Of a stretch of 64,000 nucleotides of DNA, positions 2,345 to 12,031 are shown piece after piece (positions within the stretch are counted from its first letter, which is position 1; each line of letters opens with the position of its first letter). The notes beneath the pieces were generated by a model, which ran no database searches, was not told the DNA's origin, and worked only from the letters and a program-made list of their open reading frames with translations. The stretch lies in the IMG/VR virus record IMGVR_UViG_3300032242_002454, positions 1 through 64,000 of that record. One strand, 5' to 3'. Both the position numbers and the translations under genes were made by a program.

Positions 2345-3378
2345 TCACATATCTTAGAAGTAGTTCTTATGGAACACATTCTATGTGTCCTCAACAATAT
2401 TTTTTTGAATATATTCTTGGTTTAAGATCTCCATCTAATAAAAAAGCAGACAAAGGAACTATTTGTCATAAAGCTTTAGAAATCTTAGCATTTATTAAAC
2501 TAAATACCCAAAACAATAATCCTATTTTTGAGGATGACGTTGTGGGAAAAGTGGATATCAATAATTATAGCATCAAAAAAATAACTGATCAAGTATATGA
2601 TTATTATACTTCTCAATTTACTCATCATGTTTGGGAACCAAAAGATCATAAAGATTGTCATGCATGGATTAATAAAGCCTTAGAATATAATAAGGGTATG
2701 TTTGATCCTAGGAATAGATATATCGTTCAGCCAGAGCAACGCTTTGATATTGAAATCAAGAAACCTTGGTCCTCTTACCGATATGAAACTAAAGACGGAA
2801 TCCTTGAAGGTAATCTTGCTATAAAAGGTACTATTGATCTTATTACTAAAGTCAATGATAATACATTAGAAGTTATTGACTGGAAAACAGGACGAAGACT
2901 AGATTGGGCCACTGGAGAAGAAAAAACTTTAGAGAAATTACAAAATGATCCTCAGTTAAGAATATACCATTATGCTATTCAACATCTATATCCAGAAATT
3001 GAACATGTAATGATATCTATTAATTTTATTAATGATGGTGGAGCATTTACTATTTGTTTTGACAAAAATGATTTATACAAAACTGAAATAATGTTAAAAC
3101 AAAAATTTGAAACTATCAAGAATACCCAAAAACCTCAGTTAAATAAAAGTTGGAAATGTAGTAAGCTTTGCTATTTTGGTAAAAGTACATTTGCTAATAG
3201 TACAATAGAGCCATTAACAGAATACAGAGATGGTCAGCTAACAGCTAAAAATCAATGTATGACTAAGTGTGAACAGGTTAAACACGATATAGATACAACC
3301 GGGATGAAAGCAGTCATTGACAAGTATCAGGCTCCCGGTTATAGTATAGGTCACTACAAGGCACCCGGCACCGTATAA
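2338..3378 (+). CDS. PD-(D/E)XK (Cas4/RecB-like) exonuclease, probable non-canonical ATT start
   Basis: GTICH, IKGTIDL, VIDWKTG and QLRIY motifs, with Cys pattern C...C-x2-C...C (Fe-S type). The frame is open upstream to TAA 2323-2325. AAGGAG at 2325-2330 lies 7 nt before ATT 2338 and gives IITYLRSSSY ahead of the track Met. Confidence 0.8.
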   Translation: MIITYLRSSSYGTHSMCPQQYFFEYILGLRSPSNKKADKGTICHKALEILAFIKLNTQNNNPIFEDDVVGKVDINNYSIKKITDQVYDYYTSQFTHHVWEPKDHKDCHAWINKALEYNKGMFDPRNRYIVQPEQRFDIEIKKPWSSYRYETKDGILEGNLAIKGTIDLITKVNDNTLEVIDWKTGRRLDWATGEEKTLEKLQNDPQLRIYHYAIQHLYPEIEHVMISINFINDGGAFTICFDKNDLYKTEIMLKQKFETIKNTQKPQLNKSWKCSKLCYFGKSTFANSTIEPLTEYRDGQLTAKNQCMTKCEQVKHDIDTTGMKAVIDKYQAPGYSIGHYKAPGTV

Positions 3379-3417
3379 CATTTTGGCTAGAACAATTAAA
3401 TAAGGAGACAATTAGAT

Positions 3418-5311
3418 ATGGACATGACTAGAGGATATGTGCCTCTTCATGTCCATTCTTAGGTGGGCTATGTACTCACTTTTGGATGGACTGTCGCAAC
3501 CAAGAACTATTGCTGAACGATGTCAAGAAATCGGAGCAACTTCTTGTGCATTAACTGATCATGGTAATATTGCCGGAGCAGTTAAGTTTTATACAGAAAT
3601 GAAAAAGAAAGGCATTAAGCCTATTCTAGGTTGTGAGGTTTATCTATGTGATCAAGACCCTAAGATTAAAACCAAAGAAAATAAAGACTTGACCCACTTT
3701 GTTATTCTAGCTAAGAATTATGAAGGGTGGAAGAGTCTTATTAGAATTGTTTCTGAGTCTAATCAACCAGATCATTTTTATCATAAGCCAAGACTAGATA
3801 TAGCCTCTTTGGCAAAGTATACTAATGGTAATATTATTGGTTTTTGTGGTCATGCTGGATCATATTTGGCAGATAGGATAACCTCTGATAATCGATTAAT
3901 TGGCGATTGGAAGAATGTTGGTATTGACCAAATTGGTAAATTAAAAGATGTTTTTGGCAAAGAGAACTTTTTTCTAGAAGCACAATTAATGGATTCGGTC
4001 AATTCTCCTATTCAGACACTCTTAACTGGTGCTATGAGAGATTTGGCCAAAATTACCAACACTAAAATCATATCTACGCCAGACGCTCATTATTGCCGTA
4101 AGGAGGACGCTGTAGATCAAAGGGTGCTTCTCTGTAATAATTTAAAAACAACCTTCCCAGAGATCAGCAGGAAGATTAGCAATGATGAGGAAGTGCCTCT
4201 TGGATGCTTTTTTACATCTGACAACTTCCATATCCTATCTCCAGAAGAAATGGGTCATTTTCATACAGAAGAAGAGATGGAGAATACCAAGTTAGTGGAT
4301 GCATTATGTGAAAAATATAATATATTAGATAAGCCACATTTACCCCCATTTCCTTGTCCTGACGGAGCTAATCCAGATGAATATCTAAGGCAATTATGTC
4401 GTAATGGTTGGAGAGATAAAATTGCTAATAATATAGATAAAGATATCCAAGAAGATTATGTGAATCGAATAAAGTATGAATTAGAGGTTCTACAAGGAGC
4501 CGATCTCTCTAGTTACTTTTTAATTGTACAAGATATTGTGAACTATGTCAGGAAAAATAACTGGCTTCCGGGACCGGGAAGAGGAAGTGCGGCTGGTTGT
4601 CTAGTCTCTTACCTGATTGGTATTACTAGTATTGATCCTATTAAGTATGGTTTATTATTTGACAGATTTTATAATGCTGGACGAAATAGTAAAGACCATA
4701 TCTCTATGCCTGATATTGACGTAGACGTACCTATTAATAAGAGAGAAAATGTAATCGAATATATTAAGCAGTGTTATGGGGCTGATAAGGTTTCCCAAAT
4801 GATTACATTTAATACTATTAAGGGTCGTGGTGCTATTAAGGATGTATTGAGAGTTTATGGTAATATATCATTTGATGAAATGAATAAGATCACTAAAAGT
4901 ATTCCAGATGAAGCTAAAATTGCCGACGATCTTCAAGAAATGAAAGAAGAAACTGGGGAAGCATCTATTATTCGGTGGGCATTAGAAAATGAGCCAGATA
5001 AACTGAAAGAATGGTGCTATATAGATGAAAAAAATGAATTACAAGGACCGCTTGCCAAAAGATTTGAACAGGCTATTAGATTAGAAGGAACTAAGTCTAA
5101 TCAGTCCAAACATGCGGCTGGTATTGCTATTAGTTCTAAACCATTAAATACATTGTGTCCTATGGTGTACGATTCAAAAAACGATCAGCTTATAGCTGGT
5201 ATGGAAATGCAAGATCTAGAAGCGTTAGGCATTATCAAATTTGATATTCTTGGCGTGGCAATGTTAGATAAAATTATGACTATCCAAGACATCTTATCAA
5301 AAGGAGATTAA
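3418..5311 (+). CDS. dnaE: DNA polymerase III alpha (DnaE) N-terminal chain (PHP + palm); inferred join(3418..3459,3470..5311) across a 10-nt coding gap
   Basis: An AAGGAG SD precedes ATG 3418, giving MDMTRGYVPLHVHS then TAG. The +1 frame resumes MYSLLDG at 3470. PHP motifs TDHG, GCEVY and DAHY are present, as are GPGRGSAAG, MPDIDVD and KFDILG. No intein ends are seen. Confidence 0.9.
3451..3491 (+). promoter_or_regulatory. 41-nt mRNA hairpin covering the dnaE coding gap (candidate recoding/translation-control element)
   Basis: GUCCAUUC(3451-58) pairs with GGAUGGAC(3484-91). A 2x2 U-U internal loop follows, then AGGUGGG(3461-67) pairs with CUCACUU(3475-81). The 7-nt loop CUAUGUA contains AUG 3470. 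Pairing was worked out by hand. Confidence 0.6.
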
Positions 5312-5312
5312 T

Positions 5313-5510
5313 ATGGCAATGCAAAAATTCATGGATATAGCAATCGGTACTGTTTTTAAGCATGAAGGTAATGATTATCGAAAAATCCCAGAAGAAAGAA
5401 TAAGTTGTTGTTCGGCCATTAATGCTCAAGGAGTACATAATGCCCAGCAAAGAATTCAGGTTTTACCATTGGTGGAAGTCGAAGTCCTAGGAGATAACAC
5501 TCAAGCATGA
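5313..5510 (+). CDS. Small hypothetical protein (65 aa, beta-rich, SCC motif)
   Basis: Fills the gap between dnaE-N and the exonuclease and overlaps the latter by ATGA coupling. Confidence 0.75.
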   Translation: MAMQKFMDIAIGTVFKHEGNDYRKIPEERISCCSAINAQGVHNAQQRIQVLPLVEVEVLGDNTQA

Positions 5511-6208
5511 TCAATTATAACAAAATTTGCGTTTTTGATTTTGAAACCGATGGTTCTGATCCTAAATCTTGTAGCCCGGTACAAATTGCAGCAATAATTA
5601 TTGATCCACTAAAATTGGAAATTGTTCCTAACTCTGAATTTAATATCTTTTTTAAACCAGAGGTATTGGCAAATGATGAACAATATCAATATACTACAGA
5701 TATTTTGGATTTTCATGCTAAGGTAAGAGGCTCTTCTAAAGAAGCTATTTTAGAAGAATGGAAAAAGTATCCAGCTCAAGATCAGTCTTGGAAATTGTTT
5801 ACAAACTATTTAACAATGCATCATACAAGATCCAGCAAAAAGAGCCAGTTTAGTGCTCCTATTGCTGCTGGTTACAATATAAATAGATTTGACTTGCCAA
5901 TTATTGATAGATTGAGTCGTAAATATGGTAATACAAATAAGGAAGAAAGAAGCGATATTTTTTATCCAAGAGACGTATTAGATATTATGAACCTAGTCTT
6001 CTATTGGTTTGAAAATAATGGAGATCTCAAAAATCTTTCTCTGGATACTCTTAGAGATTATCTGGGCATAAATAAAGAGGGTTCTCATGATGCTCTAAAA
6101 GATGTTAAAGATTGTGCAGAAATTCTGATTCGTTTTATGAGACTACATCGTAACCTAGGAAATAAGATTAAGTTTAAGGACTCATTTCAGTCACCATCAC
6201 ATGTCTAA
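5507..6208 (+). CDS. DEDDh 3'-5' exonuclease (Pol III epsilon-like proofreader)
   Basis: ExoI VFDFETDG, ExoII GYNINRFDLP, ExoIII HDALKD. Confidence 0.9.
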   Translation: MINYNKICVFDFETDGSDPKSCSPVQIAAIIIDPLKLEIVPNSEFNIFFKPEVLANDEQYQYTTDILDFHAKVRGSSKEAILEEWKKYPAQDQSWKLFTNYLTMHHTRSSKKSQFSAPIAAGYNINRFDLPIIDRLSRKYGNTNKEERSDIFYPRDVLDIMNLVFYWFENNGDLKNLSLDTLRDYLGINKEGSHDALKDVKDCAEILIRFMRLHRNLGNKIKFKDSFQSPSHV

Positions 6209-7832
6209 AAAATTTCAATACAGTTGTGGATGTTCTTTTGACATTATATCTGAACATGACGATAAGGATAGAATGACTCTTAGATTTAATCCTAAAATAG
6301 AAGAGATAAGTTTGGAGTGTCAAAAGACTTGGGATCTAATTTCAGATGGAAATACTAAGGGGTGTTTCCAGTTGGAGTCTAGACTTGGTAAGTCTATGGC
6401 TAAAAAACTAAAGCCAGAAAATATAGAACAGCTATCTGCCTTAATTAGTATTATGAGGCCGGGTTGTCTAGAAGCTTTTAGAGATGGCAAATCAGTTTCT
6501 AATCATTTTATAGATAAAAAGAATGGTCAGGAGTCTGTAGACTATTATCATCCCTCTTTGGAGCCTATTTTAAAGGCAACGTATGGTGAAATGATTTATC
6601 AAGAACAAGCTATGGAAATAGCTAAGATCGTAGCTGGTTTTGATCTTCAGGAAGCAGACATGTTAAGAAAAGCCATTGGTAAAAAGAAACCAGAAGAAAT
6701 GGCTAAAATTAAGATTAAGTTCTTAGAAGGTACAGAAAAAGTAGGAACAGTGGCTACTTCTCAAGCAGAAGAAATTTTCGGCTGGATTGAAAAGTCTCAG
6801 AGATATTCTTTCAATAAATCTCATGCTGTTAGTTATGCTATTAATAGTTATTTGTCAGCTTATACTAAAGCTCATTTTCCCAAAATATTTTTTGCTGCAT
6901 ATTTAAGATTTGCAAAAGATAAAATTGATCCTAAAGCAGAAATTAAAGAATTGGTACAAAACGCTAACGAAATGGATGTTCCTGTTTGTATACCAGATAT
7001 TAGAAACTTAAATCAACTATTTATTCTTAAGAATAATAAGATCTATTTTGGACTAACAGATATTAAAGGTTTTGGACAATCTGTATTTGATAAATTAGTC
7101 AAACTCAAAGAAGATAAGAAGCTAGACTTCGATACTATGAATTGGATAGAAATGCTTATGATGGTTTTGATCAATATCAACTCCACATCTGCTAAAGCTC
7201 TAATTCAAAGTGGAGCAATGTCATATTTGGGTAAGAATAGGGTGGCCATGTTATTTGAATTTGGTTTAGTCTCAGAATTAACTAAGAAAGAATCAGATTT
7301 CATCATAGCTAATCTCTATAAATATAAATCAATAGGAGATGCTCTTCACGATCTATATCATAATGGTAAGTCTAATAAGAATAGAAAAGCTATTATACTA
7401 GACCTAATTAATAGTTATAATAAACCCCCATATTCTTTAGAAGATAATCCAGATTGGATCGCTGATGCGGAGGATTCATTTTTAGGATGTAGTATTACTT
7501 GTTCCAAGGTTGATATGTATGATATTACTATGACCAATACAACTTGTAAAGACTTTAAAAATACCACACTCAAAGATAATATTTTGTTGTGCGGAGAAAT
7601 TGAAAGTGTGGGTGTTACTAAGACCAAATCTGGCAAGACTCCGGGACAAGAGATGGCATTTGTTACTATGAGTGATGGAACAGGGGTAATTGAGTCTGTT
7701 GTATTTTTTCCAGAAGCCTACAAAGCTTATCGAAATATTTTATTTGATGGTAATGTTATTATCGTAAAGGGGAACAAAGCAAAGTCTGGTGATTCGTTAA
7801 TAGTTGAAAAGACGTATATTCCCAAAACTTGA
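6201..7832 (+). CDS. dnaE: DNA polymerase III alpha (DnaE) C-terminal chain (fingers, HhH, OB fold)
   Basis: GCFQLES, IMRPG, TYGEMIYQEQAM, ADMLRKAIGKK, YSFNKSHAVSYA, FGLTDIKG and the OB-fold MAFVTMSDGTG. Confidence 0.92.
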   Translation: MSKKFQYSCGCSFDIISEHDDKDRMTLRFNPKIEEISLECQKTWDLISDGNTKGCFQLESRLGKSMAKKLKPENIEQLSALISIMRPGCLEAFRDGKSVSNHFIDKKNGQESVDYYHPSLEPILKATYGEMIYQEQAMEIAKIVAGFDLQEADMLRKAIGKKKPEEMAKIKIKFLEGTEKVGTVATSQAEEIFGWIEKSQRYSFNKSHAVSYAINSYLSAYTKAHFPKIFFAAYLRFAKDKIDPKAEIKELVQNANEMDVPVCIPDIRNLNQLFILKNNKIYFGLTDIKGFGQSVFDKLVKLKEDKKLDFDTMNWIEMLMMVLININSTSAKALIQSGAMSYLGKNRVAMLFEFGLVSELTKKESDFIIANLYKYKSIGDALHDLYHNGKSNKNRKAIILDLINSYNKPPYSLEDNPDWIADAEDSFLGCSITCSKVDMYDITMTNTTCKDFKNTTLKDNILLCGEIESVGVTKTKSGKTPGQEMAFVTMSDGTGVIESVVFFPEAYKAYRNILFDGNVIIVKGNKAKSGDSLIVEKTYIPKT

Positions 7833-7856
7833 CGCGGACGACCCTCAAACTATAAT
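7829..7856 (+). promoter_or_regulatory. Sigma70-like promoter upstream of ssb
   Basis: TTGACG (7829-7834), 16 nt, then TATAAT (7851-7856); about 50 nt upstream of the ssb ATG, which has an AAGGAG SD. Confidence 0.7.
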
Positions 7857-7905
7857 ATGAAGCAGTGCGTTGGACCTTGGTTTTTTAATTTTAAGGAGAA
7901 CTTGA

Positions 7906-8277
7906 ATGAATATTAATATTCTACGTGGTAATTTAGCTAGAGATCCAGAAATGCGAGTTGTTAATACTGGTGGAAAGCAGACATCAGTAGTAAATTTTAC
8001 TGTTGCTGTTTCTCGTGAGTATACTAAGGCAAATGGCGAACGAGATAAGGTTACTACGTTCGTTCCTTGTGAAGCATGGGATAGTGGTGCCGAGATTATT
8101 GGTCAATCCTTTAAGAAGGGTGATTTTGTTCTGGTAGAAGGCTCACTAAGGAATGACTCATGGGAGAAGGATGGAGTGAAGCATAATTCTCTCAAGGTCA
8201 GGGTAAATAACTTTTCTAAGATTACTAAGCTATCAAAGAAAAGTAAGGAACAGTCGGAAGAAGTAGTAAGCTTCTAA
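7906..8277 (+). CDS. ssb: Single-stranded DNA-binding protein
   Basis: ILRGNLARDPEMR, FTVAVSR, VPCEAW, KGDFVLVEGSLRNDSWEKDG. The tail is short and has no DDIPF motif. Confidence 0.95.
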   Translation: MNINILRGNLARDPEMRVVNTGGKQTSVVNFTVAVSREYTKANGERDKVTTFVPCEAWDSGAEIIGQSFKKGDFVLVEGSLRNDSWEKDGVKHNSLKVRVNNFSKITKLSKKSKEQSEEVVSF

Positions 8278-8306
8278 TCTTATTCTAATCTTATCACTTT
8301 AAAGAG

Positions 8307-8334
8307 ATGGGGGTGGTAACACCCCCCATTTTTT
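8307..8334 (+). terminator. Rho-independent terminator after ssb
   Basis: GGGGGTG-GTAA-CACCCCC stem with a GNRA loop, followed by a T-tract that ends at 8334. Confidence 0.75.
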
Positions 8335-10002
8335 ATGTCTAACAAAAAACTCAAAATTTTAATGTGTTCCGAAGCCAGTTTTTTAAGCTCTGGATTTGGT
8401 ACTTATGCAAAAGAAATCTTAAAAAGACTCTATGCAACAGGCAAATATGAAATAGCTGAATTTGCTTCTTATGGAAAAGTTAATGATCCTAAAGACGTAG
8501 ATATTCATTGGAGATATTATGCTAATGCTGTGGATGATAGAGATCCAAGACATAAAGAATATAATAGCTCAATGGAGAACCAGTTTGGTAGATGGAGATT
8601 TGAGAGAGTTCTTTTAGATTTCCAACCAGATATTGTATTTGATGTAAGAGATTATTGGATGAATTCTTATCAACAATTTTCTCCATTACGACCATTCTAT
8701 CACTGGGTTCTTATGCCCACAGTCGATTCTGCTCCACAACAAGAAGAATGGATTGATACTTTTATTCATGCTGATGCTATTTTTACATATTCTGATTTTG
8801 GTAAAGACACAGTATTAGAGCAAAGCAATAATCAAATAAGATATATAGATACTACATCTCCTGGTGTTGATCTTAATACTTTTAATATTATCGCAGATAA
8901 GAAGTCTGTAAAAAAAGCTTTAGGATTAGATGAAGATAGTTTTATTATCGGTTCTGTGATGCGTAATCAAAAGAGAAAGCTTATTCCAGAGCTTTTTGTT
9001 TCATTGCGTAAATTACTAGATAAGTTTCAAACAGAAAATAATCCTATTGGAGAAAAGACATATCTGTATTTACATACCAGCTATCCAGATGCTGGCTGGG
9101 ATTTGCCACAACTATTAAAAGAATATAAGATAGGTAATAGAGTTCTATTTACATATAGTTGTAAAAACTGTGGCTTTTTTCAGCCATCTTTATTTCAACA
9201 TCCTCTCACTTTCTGTCCAAGATGTAGTCAAAAATCTTTGTCTATGCCTAATGTAAGTGCTGGAGTACAATCTAAAAATTTAGCTACCATTATAAATACT
9301 TTTGATATCTATGTACAATATGCTATTTGTGAAGGTTTCGGTATGCCTCAAGTAGAAGCTGCTGCTTGTGGTGTGCCAATAGCTTCTGTAGACTATAGCG
9401 CTATGAGTGACGTTGTTAGAAAAGTAAATGGTTATCCAGTTAGAATTAATCAATATTTCAAAGAACTGGAAACCAAAGCTATTCGAGCTTATCCAGATAA
9501 TAATGATTTAGTAGAAATACTATATAATTATGCTAATATGCCAGATTTCTTAAAAGAACAAAAAAGATTCGAAACCAGAAAGCTAACAGAAGAACATTAT
9601 AACTGGGACCATATTGCACAAAAATGGGAAAAATATTTTGATAGCGTTAAACTTACTGGTTTACAAGGTAAGTGGTCAGAAAACTTACCAATGTTGGAGA
9701 CTATTAAAGAACCAACAGGGAAAGTCAATCCATATGATTTTATGACACATTCAGTATCTAAGAATATGTCTCAACATCAGCTTACGTCATCATTAATACT
9801 ATTGAATATGATTAAAGATTTGGACTATGGTTTTGCTATTAATGGAATACAAACAGAACCATATGATATAAGCAAAGCATTAGATGTTATCAATAATATT
9901 ATTAACAATAACAATTTAGCTCAAAATGCTAAGATGAATCATGATAGTCTAAGAAATGAAGATTTTATCCAATATGCTCATATGAAAGAAAACCTAAAAT
10001 GA
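8335..10002 (+). CDS. GT-B (GT4-like) glycosyltransferase with CxxC..CxxC insertion
   Basis: N-terminal SGFG motif, IGSVMRNQKRK, EGFGMPQVEAAACGVP; Zn ribbon CKNC...CPRC. Confidence 0.85.
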   Translation: MSNKKLKILMCSEASFLSSGFGTYAKEILKRLYATGKYEIAEFASYGKVNDPKDVDIHWRYYANAVDDRDPRHKEYNSSMENQFGRWRFERVLLDFQPDIVFDVRDYWMNSYQQFSPLRPFYHWVLMPTVDSAPQQEEWIDTFIHADAIFTYSDFGKDTVLEQSNNQIRYIDTTSPGVDLNTFNIIADKKSVKKALGLDEDSFIIGSVMRNQKRKLIPELFVSLRKLLDKFQTENNPIGEKTYLYLHTSYPDAGWDLPQLLKEYKIGNRVLFTYSCKNCGFFQPSLFQHPLTFCPRCSQKSLSMPNVSAGVQSKNLATIINTFDIYVQYAICEGFGMPQVEAAACGVPIASVDYSAMSDVVRKVNGYPVRINQYFKELETKAIRAYPDNNDLVEILYNYANMPDFLKEQKRFETRKLTEEHYNWDHIAQKWEKYFDSVKLTGLQGKWSENLPMLETIKEPTGKVNPYDFMTHSVSKNMSQHQLTSSLILLNMIKDLDYGFAINGIQTEPYDISKALDVINNIINNNNLAQNAKMNHDSLRNEDFIQYAHMKENLK

Positions 10003-11120
10003 ATGTATTGTTCGTAGGACCATATAGACAACAAGATGGCTGGGGTTTAGCTACCCAAAGCTATATTAGGGCACTGGCTTCTCAAAAACACAATTTAACA
10101 ACTAGGCCTGTGTTTTTAGGGACTCCATCTAATATTATAGCTGATGATATTTTAGCTTATGAAAACTCATTATATGATTCTTATGATGTAGTTATTCAAA
10201 AGACACTGCCTCATGGTTTGTTTTACAATAAAAAATTTAAGAAAAATATAGGCTTATTTGTCTTAGAAACTAATAATATTGGTAACTCATCTTGCATTTT
10301 TAATATCAATCAGATGGATGAGGTGTGGGTTCCTAGTAAGCAAGAACAAAAATGTTTACTGAAATCAGGAGTCACTAAGCCGATTAAAGTAGTATCACAA
10401 CCACTTGATACCGATTTTATTAAGTCTAATAAAAACCATACTTTGGATCTTCACTCTCTAGTTAAAAAAACATTTAAGTTTTATTTTATTGGAGAATATG
10501 TTCAACGTAAAAACATTAGGGATTTGGTAACTGCTTTTCATTTAGCTTTCGATATGAGTCAATCAGTTTCTTTAATTATTAAAACTAATATCCCCGGTAT
10601 GTCACCTATTGATTCTCAAAAAACTATTGAAAAAGATATAGAAAGTATTAAAAGACAACTTAATATTAATCAAAAATATAAACAAGAAATTATTATCACA
10701 GATAGACTATCTGATAAAGAGATAGTTGGTCTACATAACTCTTGTGACTGTTTTGTTATGCCTTCTTTTGGTGAAGCATTTTGTCGTCCAGCAGCAGAAG
10801 CTCTTGTATTAGGTAAAACACCTATTGTAACTGACAATACTGGAATGGTAGATTATGTAAATCATGATAACGGTTTTGTGGTTCAAAGTCACAGAACCCC
10901 AGTTATGTTAAATCAAAGAACTTTATCTGTAGACTATGATATCTACAATGCTAATGAGTATTGGTATCGAGTTAATATGTATGATTTAATTGAAAAAATG
11001 AGATCAGCATATATAATGAATAAAAACGAAAAGAAAAAACTAGAAGAAAAAAGACTACTAGGTATTAATAGTATTGATCAATTTAGCTATCAACACATCG
11101 GGGAAAATCTATGTATCTGA
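9999..11120 (+). CDS. GT-B (GT4-like) glycosyltransferase
   Basis: DGWG motif, RKNIRDLV, CFVMPSFGEAFCRPAAEALVLGKTPI. Confidence 0.85.
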   Translation: MNVLFVGPYRQQDGWGLATQSYIRALASQKHNLTTRPVFLGTPSNIIADDILAYENSLYDSYDVVIQKTLPHGLFYNKKFKKNIGLFVLETNNIGNSSCIFNINQMDEVWVPSKQEQKCLLKSGVTKPIKVVSQPLDTDFIKSNKNHTLDLHSLVKKTFKFYFIGEYVQRKNIRDLVTAFHLAFDMSQSVSLIIKTNIPGMSPIDSQKTIEKDIESIKRQLNINQKYKQEIIITDRLSDKEIVGLHNSCDCFVMPSFGEAFCRPAAEALVLGKTPIVTDNTGMVDYVNHDNGFVVQSHRTPVMLNQRTLSVDYDIYNANEYWYRVNMYDLIEKMRSAYIMNKNEKKKLEEKRLLGINSIDQFSYQHIGENLCI

Positions 11121-12031
11121 GCTTTATTACCGGTAATGTTTTAGAAAAATTTACAGACGATAAGCACAATATCATATATTATCCTCAAAATAATATGTTT
11201 GATCATTTGTTAGCTAATATTAATGATCATTCCTATTATATCTTTGGAGAAAATAAAGATAATTTTCAGATTGCAAATATAATCAATCTACCTAACAGTC
11301 TAGTATCTCTGTATAATTACAATTTATCTATTACAAATAATATTTTAGGCTATGCGTCTAATAATTTAAAACATTTACATTTAAATAGTATTATTTGTAC
11401 ACACTCACATAAGCCATCATATATTAAAAAAGAAGATTCTCTATTAATGGATCAAAGACTATCCAAAGAAATAAAAGTCTTTTTTACAGAATCGAGTAAA
11501 GAGTCTTGGAGAATCAGCACAGGTAGTGTTATTAAATATGGTATTCCAGAACTATTTAGTAATGAGGTTCTTGTAGAAAATAGAAAAGATGTTTTGATTC
11601 TTAATTTTGAAAATACTCCTCATGCTAAACAAATTCAGCAAGCATTATTGAACAGTAACTACTCTTGTGATATTATGGATTCATGCTCTGTTAATACTAA
11701 AGAAATTTCTAAGCAATTTAATAATTATAAGGTATGCATAGATTTATCTGAACATAATATTATTAATCTTCTGTGTGCTATTGCTGCTGGGTGTGAGACT
11801 ATTACTATGATGCCACAAATACTGGCTTCAGAATATACTGATCTTGATGGTTTAGTCTTTATAGAATCAATTAGTCAAATAGGAGATGCTATTCAATCAG
11901 TTCTTGCTATTTCAGATGAAAGAAGACAACAAAATAGAGATCAAGTGCTAGAAAGATTTTCTTTCAATAATTTTAAAACACAGTTTAATTCTTTAATTAC
12001 TAGAGCCAACACGGAGGCATTTGTCCTATGA
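11111..12031 (+). CDS. Glycosyltransferase-like protein (divergent GT-B)
   Basis: IKYGIP, FNNYKVCID, LLCAIAAGC and RFSFNNF resemble a GT-B C-terminal half; operon context agrees. Confidence 0.55.
   Translation: MYLSFITGNVLEKFTDDKHNIIYYPQNNMFDHLLANINDHSYYIFGENKDNFQIANIINLPNSLVSLYNYNLSITNNILGYASNNLKHLHLNSIICTHSHKPSYIKKEDSLLMDQRLSKEIKVFFTESSKESWRISTGSVIKYGIPELFSNEVLVENRKDVLILNFENTPHAKQIQQALLNSNYSCDIMDSCSVNTKEISKQFNNYKVCIDLSEHNIINLLCAIAAGCETITMMPQILASEYTDLDGLVFIESISQIGDAIQSVLAISDERRQQNRDQVLERFSFNNFKTQFNSLITRANTEAFVL

Follow-up and report, generated by a model that had tools for sequence, protein, structure and literature searches.

The DNA analysed here, referred to below as the window, is the first 64 kb (positions 1 to 64,000) of the 204,625-bp virus record IMGVR_UViG_3300032242_002454. 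On its plus strand, between positions 3418 and 7832, lies a dnaE locus for the alpha subunit of a family C DNA polymerase that does not specify one continuous polypeptide. The polymerase is divided into an N chain and a C chain with two other genes between them, and the N chain is itself interrupted after 14 codons by a stop codon and a short coding gap. The split into two chains is real, old, derived, and under selection, as judged by comparison of related sequences, and on balance we favor the explanation that the locus encodes a C-family replicase in three coding segments, namely the two chains and a bypassed 14-codon start. Most of the interest of the locus lies in this 5′ element, a candidate cassette for programmed translational bypass.

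Two DnaE Chains from Separate Genes

The body of the N chain (positions 3470-5311, plus strand as for all features described here; 613 aa) is made up of PHP, palm, and thumb, holds the three catalytic aspartates of the enzyme, matches the Pfam families PHP (2.8e-32) and DNA_pol3_alpha (1.2e-73), and aligns with the solved alpha subunits of Taq, Mycobacterium tuberculosis (Mtb), and Escherichia coli to about residue 566 (E. coli numbering). Its stop codon (5309-5311) is 18 aa past KFDILG, the motif with the third catalytic Asp. The C chain (6201-7832, 543 aa) has a new start beyond the two intervening genes and carries the fingers, helix-hairpin-helix (HhH), and OB domains (Pfam fingers 1.5e-47, HHH_6, and OB); its alignment with E. 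coli alpha begins at residue 586, and FQLES begins at its residue 56. Taken together, the chains provide PHP, palm with three catalytic Asp, fingers, HhH/beta-binding, and OB regions in DnaE order, with the PDIDVD and KFDILG motifs conserved. An earlier sequence-only reading of this DNA had placed the end of the N chain after KFDILG and the beginning of the C chain before FQLES, and Pfam and the alignments to solved alphas confirm both positions. The open reading frames (ORFs) that it had described between the halves, for a 65-aa protein and a DEDDh exonuclease, are likewise present, and the coupling of the four genes is seen in their junctions, which are, in gene order, a 1-nt gap, a 4-nt overlap, and an 8-nt overlap.

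Neither chain has an intein or Hint domain in a Pfam scan that does detect inteins in relatives, and Rfam finds no intron or other RNA family near gathering score in positions 3000-8500. The C chain opens with a head of 32 aa that is specific to the split form and has invariant cysteines C9, C11, and C40 (alignment A2), and this head lacks the His-Asn end of a C-intein, in agreement with the earlier statement that intein termini are absent. A dnaE of the split-intein type would instead have an N-intein of about 100 aa, beginning with Cys, at the end of its N gene, and at the start of its C gene a C-intein whose His-Asn end precedes Cys, Ser, or Thr. As the three catalytic aspartates are on the N chain and the fingers on the C chain, activity would require the chains to associate. 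Homology and conservation make it very likely that they form a functional alpha non-covalently, which is the only reasonable reading of an arrangement that is conserved, derived, and under selection. An ancestral single dnaE would have been broken at the palm/fingers boundary to give halves that are now separate, translationally coupled genes, and these halves would re-associate into one active site with the catalytic Asp supplied by the N chain and the nucleotide-binding fingers by the C chain.

Conservation and Origin of the Split

At least 125 relatives were found in IMG/VR, and gene order was counted in the 44 distinct loci that cover the whole cassette. All 44 retain the four-gene order, at 55-97% protein identity and with both halves unbroken. 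The earlier reading had proposed a survey of split-point conservation; an exhaustive N-chain search, in which the best 150 of the 50%-identity representatives were considered (39-70% identity), gives the same end point in 100 of the 150, these chains stopping no more than 45 residues past a KFDILG-like motif, while 5 of the 150 continue into the fingers. A word search recovered stand-alone C chains of ~540 aa in 3724 clusters.

Unsplit relatives are 45-49% identical (P0137 and P0150 at 48-49%). Their modules are syntenic with the split ones and have the exonuclease homologue outside dnaE, two genes upstream of it in L159 and ~4 kb downstream in L157, indicating that the split is derived. In a more distant split relative (L158, 40% identical) the exonuclease gene is again between the halves, among 14 genes spanning 5.9 kb, and in L039 a 3.6-kb cargo (L039:10710-14356) has entered between the exonuclease gene and the C chain, comprising genes for an FkbM-type methyltransferase, a DUF1559 pilin-like protein with a prepilin N-methylation motif, and ThyX, together with small ORFs. 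The extra cargo in these two loci indicates that the halves are separate genes and that the break is a tolerated insertion site. DUF1559 proteins are, we assume, typical of Planctomycetota, a possible hint at the host of the L039 phage.

Compared with unsplit P0150, the split form has ~33 additional residues at the junction, including the invariant C9, C11, and C40, and P0150, the one unsplit relative compared there, lacks these cysteines. The additional residues probably help to hold the two chains together.

Several relatives carry inteins in the same polymerase. In L158 (L158:32-9018) the C chain has an intein in the fingers and the N chain begins directly next to an HNH_3 endonuclease gene, and P0038, P0133, P0136, P0161, and P0185, all relatives of the N or C chain, have inteins in palm or fingers, some with LAGLIDADG. 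The polymerase family is thus a frequent target of mobile elements, though the window genes are intein-free and no homing endonuclease is present between the window halves, where the genes are those of the 65-aa barrel protein and the DEDDh exonuclease. One further N-chain relative, P0240 (762 aa), reaches the usual split point and is then fused at its C terminus to a circularly permuted YpsA/SLOG domain.

A Stop Codon and Gap After Codon 14

The sequence-only reading had started the N chain at position 3418, but the ATG there opens only 14 codons (ORF1, 3418-3459), which are closed by TAG at 3460-3462, and the body of the chain, from ATG 3470, is in a different frame. Its picture of an intein-free split with the exonuclease between the halves stands; the stop and gap after codon 14 had been overlooked. 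ORF1 encodes the canonical DnaE N-terminus, including the PHP His-x-His (HxH) metal ligands, and is preceded by a strong Shine-Dalgarno sequence, AAGGAGA (3402-3408), that is conserved upstream of ORF1 in cassette-bearing relatives. A candidate take-off Ser codon, TCT (3457-3459), directly precedes the stop, and the 10-nt coding gap (3460-3469) ends with the triplet GCT (3467-3469) at the proposed landing position. An SD-like (Shine-Dalgarno-like) GGTGG lies 3 nt ahead of ATG 3470. The ORF containing the N chain body opens at 3437 or 3470 and ends at 5311; mechanical ORF calling takes ATG 3437, in the body frame, and so overlaps ORF1 (3437-3469).

In cassette-free relatives the same ORF1 peptide is continuous with the body frame, a single codon separating HxHS from YSLLDG. 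This in-frame fusion is found in most relatives and the interrupted form in 22 of 80 unbiased loci. A pattern scan enlarged the interrupted set to 45 distinct sequences, on which the following counts are based. The ORF1 peptide retains its Tyr, Pro, Leu, His-x-His, and Ser in every one of them. The Ser codon before the stop is invariably TCT or TCC, compared with six different Ser codons at this position in cassette-free relatives, and the stop always follows directly (TAA in 25, TAG in 18, and TGA in 2). Counted from the stop, the gap measures 6, 8, 9, 10, 11, or 12 nt and so falls in all three frames, the lengths 8, 9, 10, 11, and 12 nt varying even among close relatives. A gap of this kind is not decodable triplet by triplet, which leaves either two polypeptides or bypass.

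The triplet that closes the gap is TCN in 31 sequences, ACT in 9, and GCY in 5, so that its central C is invariant even though it lies unpaired in a loop. Take-off and landing triplets form a Ser-Ser pair in the 31, and ACT, GCT, or GCC stands at the landing position in the other 14, the window itself having TCT followed by GCT. In 20 of the 45 sequences, the body frame read back to the nearest upstream stop contains no ATG, GTG, or TTG, and a Ser triplet stands at the landing position in each of these 20; in 21 an ATG or GTG is found at the resumption codon or within three codons upstream, and in 4 the only start codon lies 11 codons upstream. A start codon at or just upstream of the resumption codon is present in 13 of the 14 sequences whose landing triplet is not Ser.

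The position of the interruption bears on the PHP domain. Seven of its metal ligands are in the N chain body and are invariant (D6, H31, E56, H76, H128, D205, and H207 in alignment A3 numbering), and the remaining two, the His-x-His pair, are in the detached ORF1 of the window. All nine ligand positions are conserved within the clade, and the ligand set is complete in the window only if ORF1 is joined to the body. Public gene calls on cassette-bearing relatives likely start at internal codons, drop the His-x-His, and misreport the PHP site as degenerate.

RNA Structure of the Cassette

ORF1 begins with 9 nt that are reverse-complementary to the 9 nt encoding His-Val-His, and it folds as a hairpin, helix 1 (3418-3456), in which 3418-3426 pairs with 3448-3456 and an inner stem pairs 3430-3434 with 3442-3446. 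Across the 45 distinct sequences the pairing of helix 1 is kept in 98.5% of cells. One covarying pair (GC in 29, AU in 13, GU in 3) ties Met/Val alternation at codon 3 to a silent change in a His codon, and the pair at the start codon is AU in 44 and GC in 1, the sequence with the GTG start having changed its partner as well. The inner stem scored poorly in the MAFFT alignment owing to register shifts between gap-length classes.

A second hairpin (hairpin 2, 3461-3481) is formed by a 5′ arm at 3461-3467, comprising the last part of the stop codon together with the gap, and a 3′ arm at 3475-3481 in the Tyr-Ser-Leu codons. Its loop (3468-3474) contains the landing-position triplet and the resumption codon. 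Counting in a fixed register gave 77% paired against 72.6% (228.7/315 cells) with shuffled 3′ arms, and since register shifts between gap-length classes blurred this count it was replaced by per-sequence folds, which recover hairpin 2 in 36 of 37 distinct segments. Synonymous wobble positions covary within the stem, the Tyr wobble showing two Watson-Crick pair types (AT in 10 and GC in 14, with GT in 1) and the Ser wobble four, its pairs including TA in 23, AT in 4, CG in 3, GT in 2, and TG in 2. A predicted alternative long-range stem (3451-3491, with 3451-3458 pairing to 3484-3491) encloses hairpin 2 and competes for the 3′ arm of helix 1; it is the minimum-energy choice in many relatives, and at positions open to synonymous change cassette bearers uniformly have GAT and GGA. 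The cassette region as a whole has a folding energy of about -27 kcal/mol (mean z -3.4), whereas the cassette-free control is unstructured, at -9.7 kcal/mol and a z of +0.41.

Proposed Translational Bypass and Its Alternatives

We suggest that the stop and the 6-12-nt gap, which cut off the first 14 codons here and in roughly one relative in four, are crossed by the ribosome. At take-off, peptidyl-tRNA(Ser) would un-pair from UCY while hairpin 2 masks the stop codon. The ribosome would then slide forward, aided by the refolding of helix 1 behind it, and the tRNA would re-pair at the xCx triplet that ends the gap, so that decoding resumes and the exact canonical N-terminus is restored. Bypass explains at once why some bodies lack a start codon, why take-off is confined to UCY, why the landing triplet favors Ser and always has a central C, and why the ligand peptide is retained, and these sequence patterns lead us to regard it, with slightly better than even confidence, as the general mechanism of the cassette. 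For the window itself the case is less secure, and bypass rather than restart there is a tentative reading that we hold at somewhat under even confidence.

Several observations weigh against bypass or against the wider model. The landing triplet of the window, GCU, mismatches at the first position, and its resumption codon is an AUG after the SD-like GGUGG, such that restart could yield a body without its first strand. The start codons in 13 of the 14 non-Ser-landing sequences make restart possible in part of the family, which may therefore use both bypass and restart. The landing site is inside hairpin 2, which is not the case in the bypass of T4 gene 60, and the nascent chain is just 14 aa, compared with the longer peptide signal that gene 60 needs. 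Since the hairpin arms lie partly within conserved coding sequence, their conservation looks stronger than it is, and among the RNA sequencing runs searched for the locus none contains it. Prediction of the complex, in which the 65-aa protein was the partner of N chain residues 290-613, the exonuclease, and C chain residues 1-340, returned a score (0.00) for the small protein alone and none for the N-C pair; it is evidence neither way.

Termination followed by restart is the alternative that survives best, although we think it unlikely as the general explanation. The polymerase would then be truly split at a third place: a free 14-aa peptide would be released and the same ribosome would restart at a nearby AUG or GUG, the peptide either complementing the PHP domain in trans or being dispensable. 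The SD-like element before ATG 3470, the 21 sequences with ATG or GTG near the resumption codon, and the body starts in nearly all non-Ser-landing sequences are as this would predict, and the stop/start overlaps resemble ordinary coupling signals such as those at the other three junctions of the locus. Against this, a canonical body start is absent in 20 of 45 sequences and 11 codons upstream in 4 more, yet the product is the sole polymerase; a diffusible 14-aa strand would bind poorly; and restart assigns no role to the invariant unpaired central C or to the Ser bias of the last gap triplet.

An improbable alternative is that ORF1 is a regulatory upstream ORF which, with the hairpins, tunes the flow of ribosomes to the body, the polymerase being without its first PHP strand, the PHP domain being structural only and the DEDDh enzyme doing all the proofreading. 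Helix 1 does bury the ORF1 start and compete with the long-range stem in the manner of a translational switch, and E. coli alpha, whose PHP site is degenerate, functions alongside a separate epsilon. Against this reading, all 45 sequences retain the ligand motif and a Tyr located in a loop in the ORF1 peptide, the body keeps its own seven PHP ligands invariant, and 20 of the 45 bodies are without a start codon.

Conventional recoding, by which a +1 or -1 frameshift or stop readthrough would decode the gap triplet by triplet, is more improbable again. Where the gap is 6, 9, or 12 nt the frame is kept and readthrough alone would suffice, and the combination of an A-site stop codon with a neighboring SD-like element is reminiscent of the prfB +1 frameshift. 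The gap lengths of 8-12 nt among close relatives are nevertheless fitted by no single shift, and decoding of the gap would add 1-3 residues to the invariant HxHS-x-YSLLDG motif. That the locus is a decaying gene or an assembly artefact in a phage that uses the host polymerase is scarcely credible, for although no sliding-clamp gene was detected in the phage, there are thousands of intact co-linear copies at 39-97% identity with invariant catalytic residues, independent runs and strains show the same structure, and no other polymerase is encoded.

Distribution of the Cassette

On a tree of 78 distinct N chains the presence of the cassette requires 15 changes, either gains or losses, and at eight nodes whose support is 0.95 or higher a clade composed entirely of cassette bearers joins one composed entirely of cassette-free chains. 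Two indels distinguish the members of sister pairs, one of 24-32 nt at the gene start and one of 9-12 nt after the Ser codon, and the sequence between these indels is more divergent than the flanks. The cassette therefore behaves as an exchangeable allele of the dnaE 5′ end. Between the upstream gene and ORF1 there is no homing endonuclease beside the cassette, other endonuclease families not having been searched for, and a homologue of the L158 HNH_3 endonuclease is absent from all loci and from the genome. We give an even chance to the proposal that the ~80-nt cassette represents a second, independent family of natural bypass elements, spreading by recombination as an alternative dnaE start and residing in a two-chain replicase.

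Genes Between the Halves

The DEDDh (DnaQ/epsilon-like) 3′-5′ exonuclease gene (5507-6208, 233 aa) matches Pfam RNase_T (1.8e-13) and phrog_192, 'DNA polymerase exonuclease subunit' (5.2e-23). Its catalytic residues D11 and E13 (ExoI), D129 (ExoII), and H194 and D199 (ExoIII) are invariant or nearly so in 23 sequences, and we consider it likely that the enzyme is the trans-acting proofreader of the split alpha. The two proofreading sites suggested by the sequence-only reading are plausible, inasmuch as the DEDDh residues are conserved and nine PHP ligands are present in the clade; in the window, however, two of these ligands are in the detached ORF1. Beyond the catalytic domain, exonuclease residues 216-233 form a conserved basic/aromatic C-terminal tail with a Lys, Phe, Lys, Ser, Phe pattern, which could be a docking peptide for the polymerase or clamp.

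The gene for the 65-aa protein (5313-5510) has its own Shine-Dalgarno sequence and encodes an invariant Cys-Cys pair (alignment A1). The protein has no Pfam or PHROG match, its Atlas neighbours are all unnamed viral clusters, and no homologue was found in the unsplit relatives. Its AlphaFold2 model is an SH3/KOW-like beta barrel (predicted local distance difference test, pLDDT, 90.6) whose structural matches are only generic SH3, KOW, and Tudor barrels (Foldseek E 0.07; VIA Z up to 5.2). A likeness to EF-P domain I was considered and is too weak to use. We regard the modelled barrel protein as a further candidate subunit of the replicase, and offer as a hypothesis only that its Cys pair shares a metal site with the cysteines of the C chain head.

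Comparison with Known Systems

The T4 gene 60/topoisomerase II cassettes combine a stop after the take-off codon with matched codons, a stem-loop at the take-off site, and 5′ pairing proposed to push the ribosome forward (bioRxiv 10.1101/2022.08.31.505936, 10.1101/2024.12.09.627546). The dnaE cassette resembles them in having a stop right after the take-off codon and, in 31 of the 45 sequences, a matching or wobble-matched landing codon, in enclosing the stop in a stem-loop and carrying 5′ of it another that could re-form once the ribosome has passed, and in its patchy, mobile-like distribution within a phage replication gene that is also split. It differs in being located in dnaE rather than a topoisomerase II gene, in its gap of 6-12 nt rather than 20-50 nt, in its take-off at Ser codon 14 rather than Gly46, and in its landing site in a hairpin loop; no adjoining homing endonuclease was found, the two have no sequence similarity, and the bypass in dnaE is a proposed one. 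To our knowledge, natural programmed bypass outside the T4 gene 60 family is known only in one yeast mitochondrial system.

If the proposed mechanism is true, the cassette is a second phage family of natural programmed bypass, and one with a very short gap. Its 45 distinct natural variants would then be a ready-made mutational series in gap length, landing triplet, and compensatory stem changes, allowing tests of the forward drive of the ribosome and of landing-site choice.

DnaE is also made from two genes in cyanobacteria, where a naturally split intein is involved and the split site is in the fingers before the FNKSH motif. The break in the present phage is instead between palm and fingers, without intein halves, and the two genes are adjacent rather than far apart. 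Closer in principle are the gp43A/gp43B polymerase of T4-like phages and the mobE-split NrdA of Aeh1, in which an essential replication enzyme is encoded by two genes and reassembles non-covalently (PMC2677866). The insert in those splits is a homing endonuclease, whereas here it consists of the phage's own DEDDh exonuclease and a small barrel protein, and gp43 belongs to family B and the present polymerase to family C. Group 2.2 jumbo phages have a 'minimal' Pol III alpha split into two proteins (Iyer et al. 2021, PMC7824862), and thus share with this phage a C-family polymerase module in two proteins. Their version lacks PHP and other domains and is encoded by genes that are far apart, alongside a family B polymerase, unlike the full-length DnaE found here as the only polymerase.

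The cooperation of DnaE with a separate DEDDh exonuclease is seen in the E. coli Pol III core, alpha-epsilon-theta (PMC3664792), and mycobacterial DnaE1, a PHP proofreader whose ligand set is intact, has an accessory DnaQ-type enzyme besides (PMC11348249, PMC5636811). The present locus would share the mycobacterial combination if ORF1 is joined to the body. It differs from both E. coli and mycobacterial alpha in having alpha in two chains, from epsilon in that the exonuclease lacks a long C-terminal tail and has only about 18 residues there, and from the theta helical bundle in that the 65-aa protein is a predicted beta barrel. In the open-access literature we found no description of an intein-free full-length dnaE split around an exonuclease gene, or of bypass in dnaE.

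A family C replicase thus tolerates a break at the palm/fingers boundary, with an exonuclease gene inside the break, in a very abundant group of uncultured freshwater jumbo phages, and offers a natural system for studying the assembly of alpha, exonuclease, and what may be a new small subunit. As the internal starts chosen by gene callers lose PHP ligands, surveys of PHP activity based on annotation would misjudge these polymerases.

Genome Context

The source record is a complete freshwater jumbo-phage genome of 204.6 kb, a single contig with direct terminal repeats, rated 100% complete by CheckV and with a GC content of 34.5%. Near-identical DNA is contained in freshwater and lake metagenomes, and a ~95%-identical contig from a second sample covers the entire locus with zero indels within genes. 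This strain, together with the gene order shared by all 44 distinct IMG/VR loci, indicates that the locus is neither chance nor assembly error. A GenBank search returned no near-identical phage, the best protein identity being about 33%. PolA, PolB, a second DnaE, and DnaN (the sliding clamp) were not detected in the complete genome, and with no other polymerase the split enzyme must be the replicase unless the phage uses that of its host.

The replication module around dnaE comprises a DnaB-like helicase (the end of the gene), a primase, a deoxynucleoside monophosphate (dNMP) kinase, a PD-(D/E)XK nuclease, the dnaE pieces, a single-stranded DNA-binding protein (SSB), and glycosyltransferases. 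Three consecutive genes follow the SSB gene at 8335-12031, two of them encoding group-1 glycosyltransferases, and the first has a 555-aa product with a weak, sub-threshold zinc-ribbon-like match; the same block also sits after dnaE in unsplit L157 and L159. With the dNMP kinase gene at 1748-2344, this block may point to sugar modification of DNA or of the surface. The 64-kb window contains no tRNA genes. Its cumulative GC skew flips sign near 18 kb, which we take to mark a switch of coding strand.

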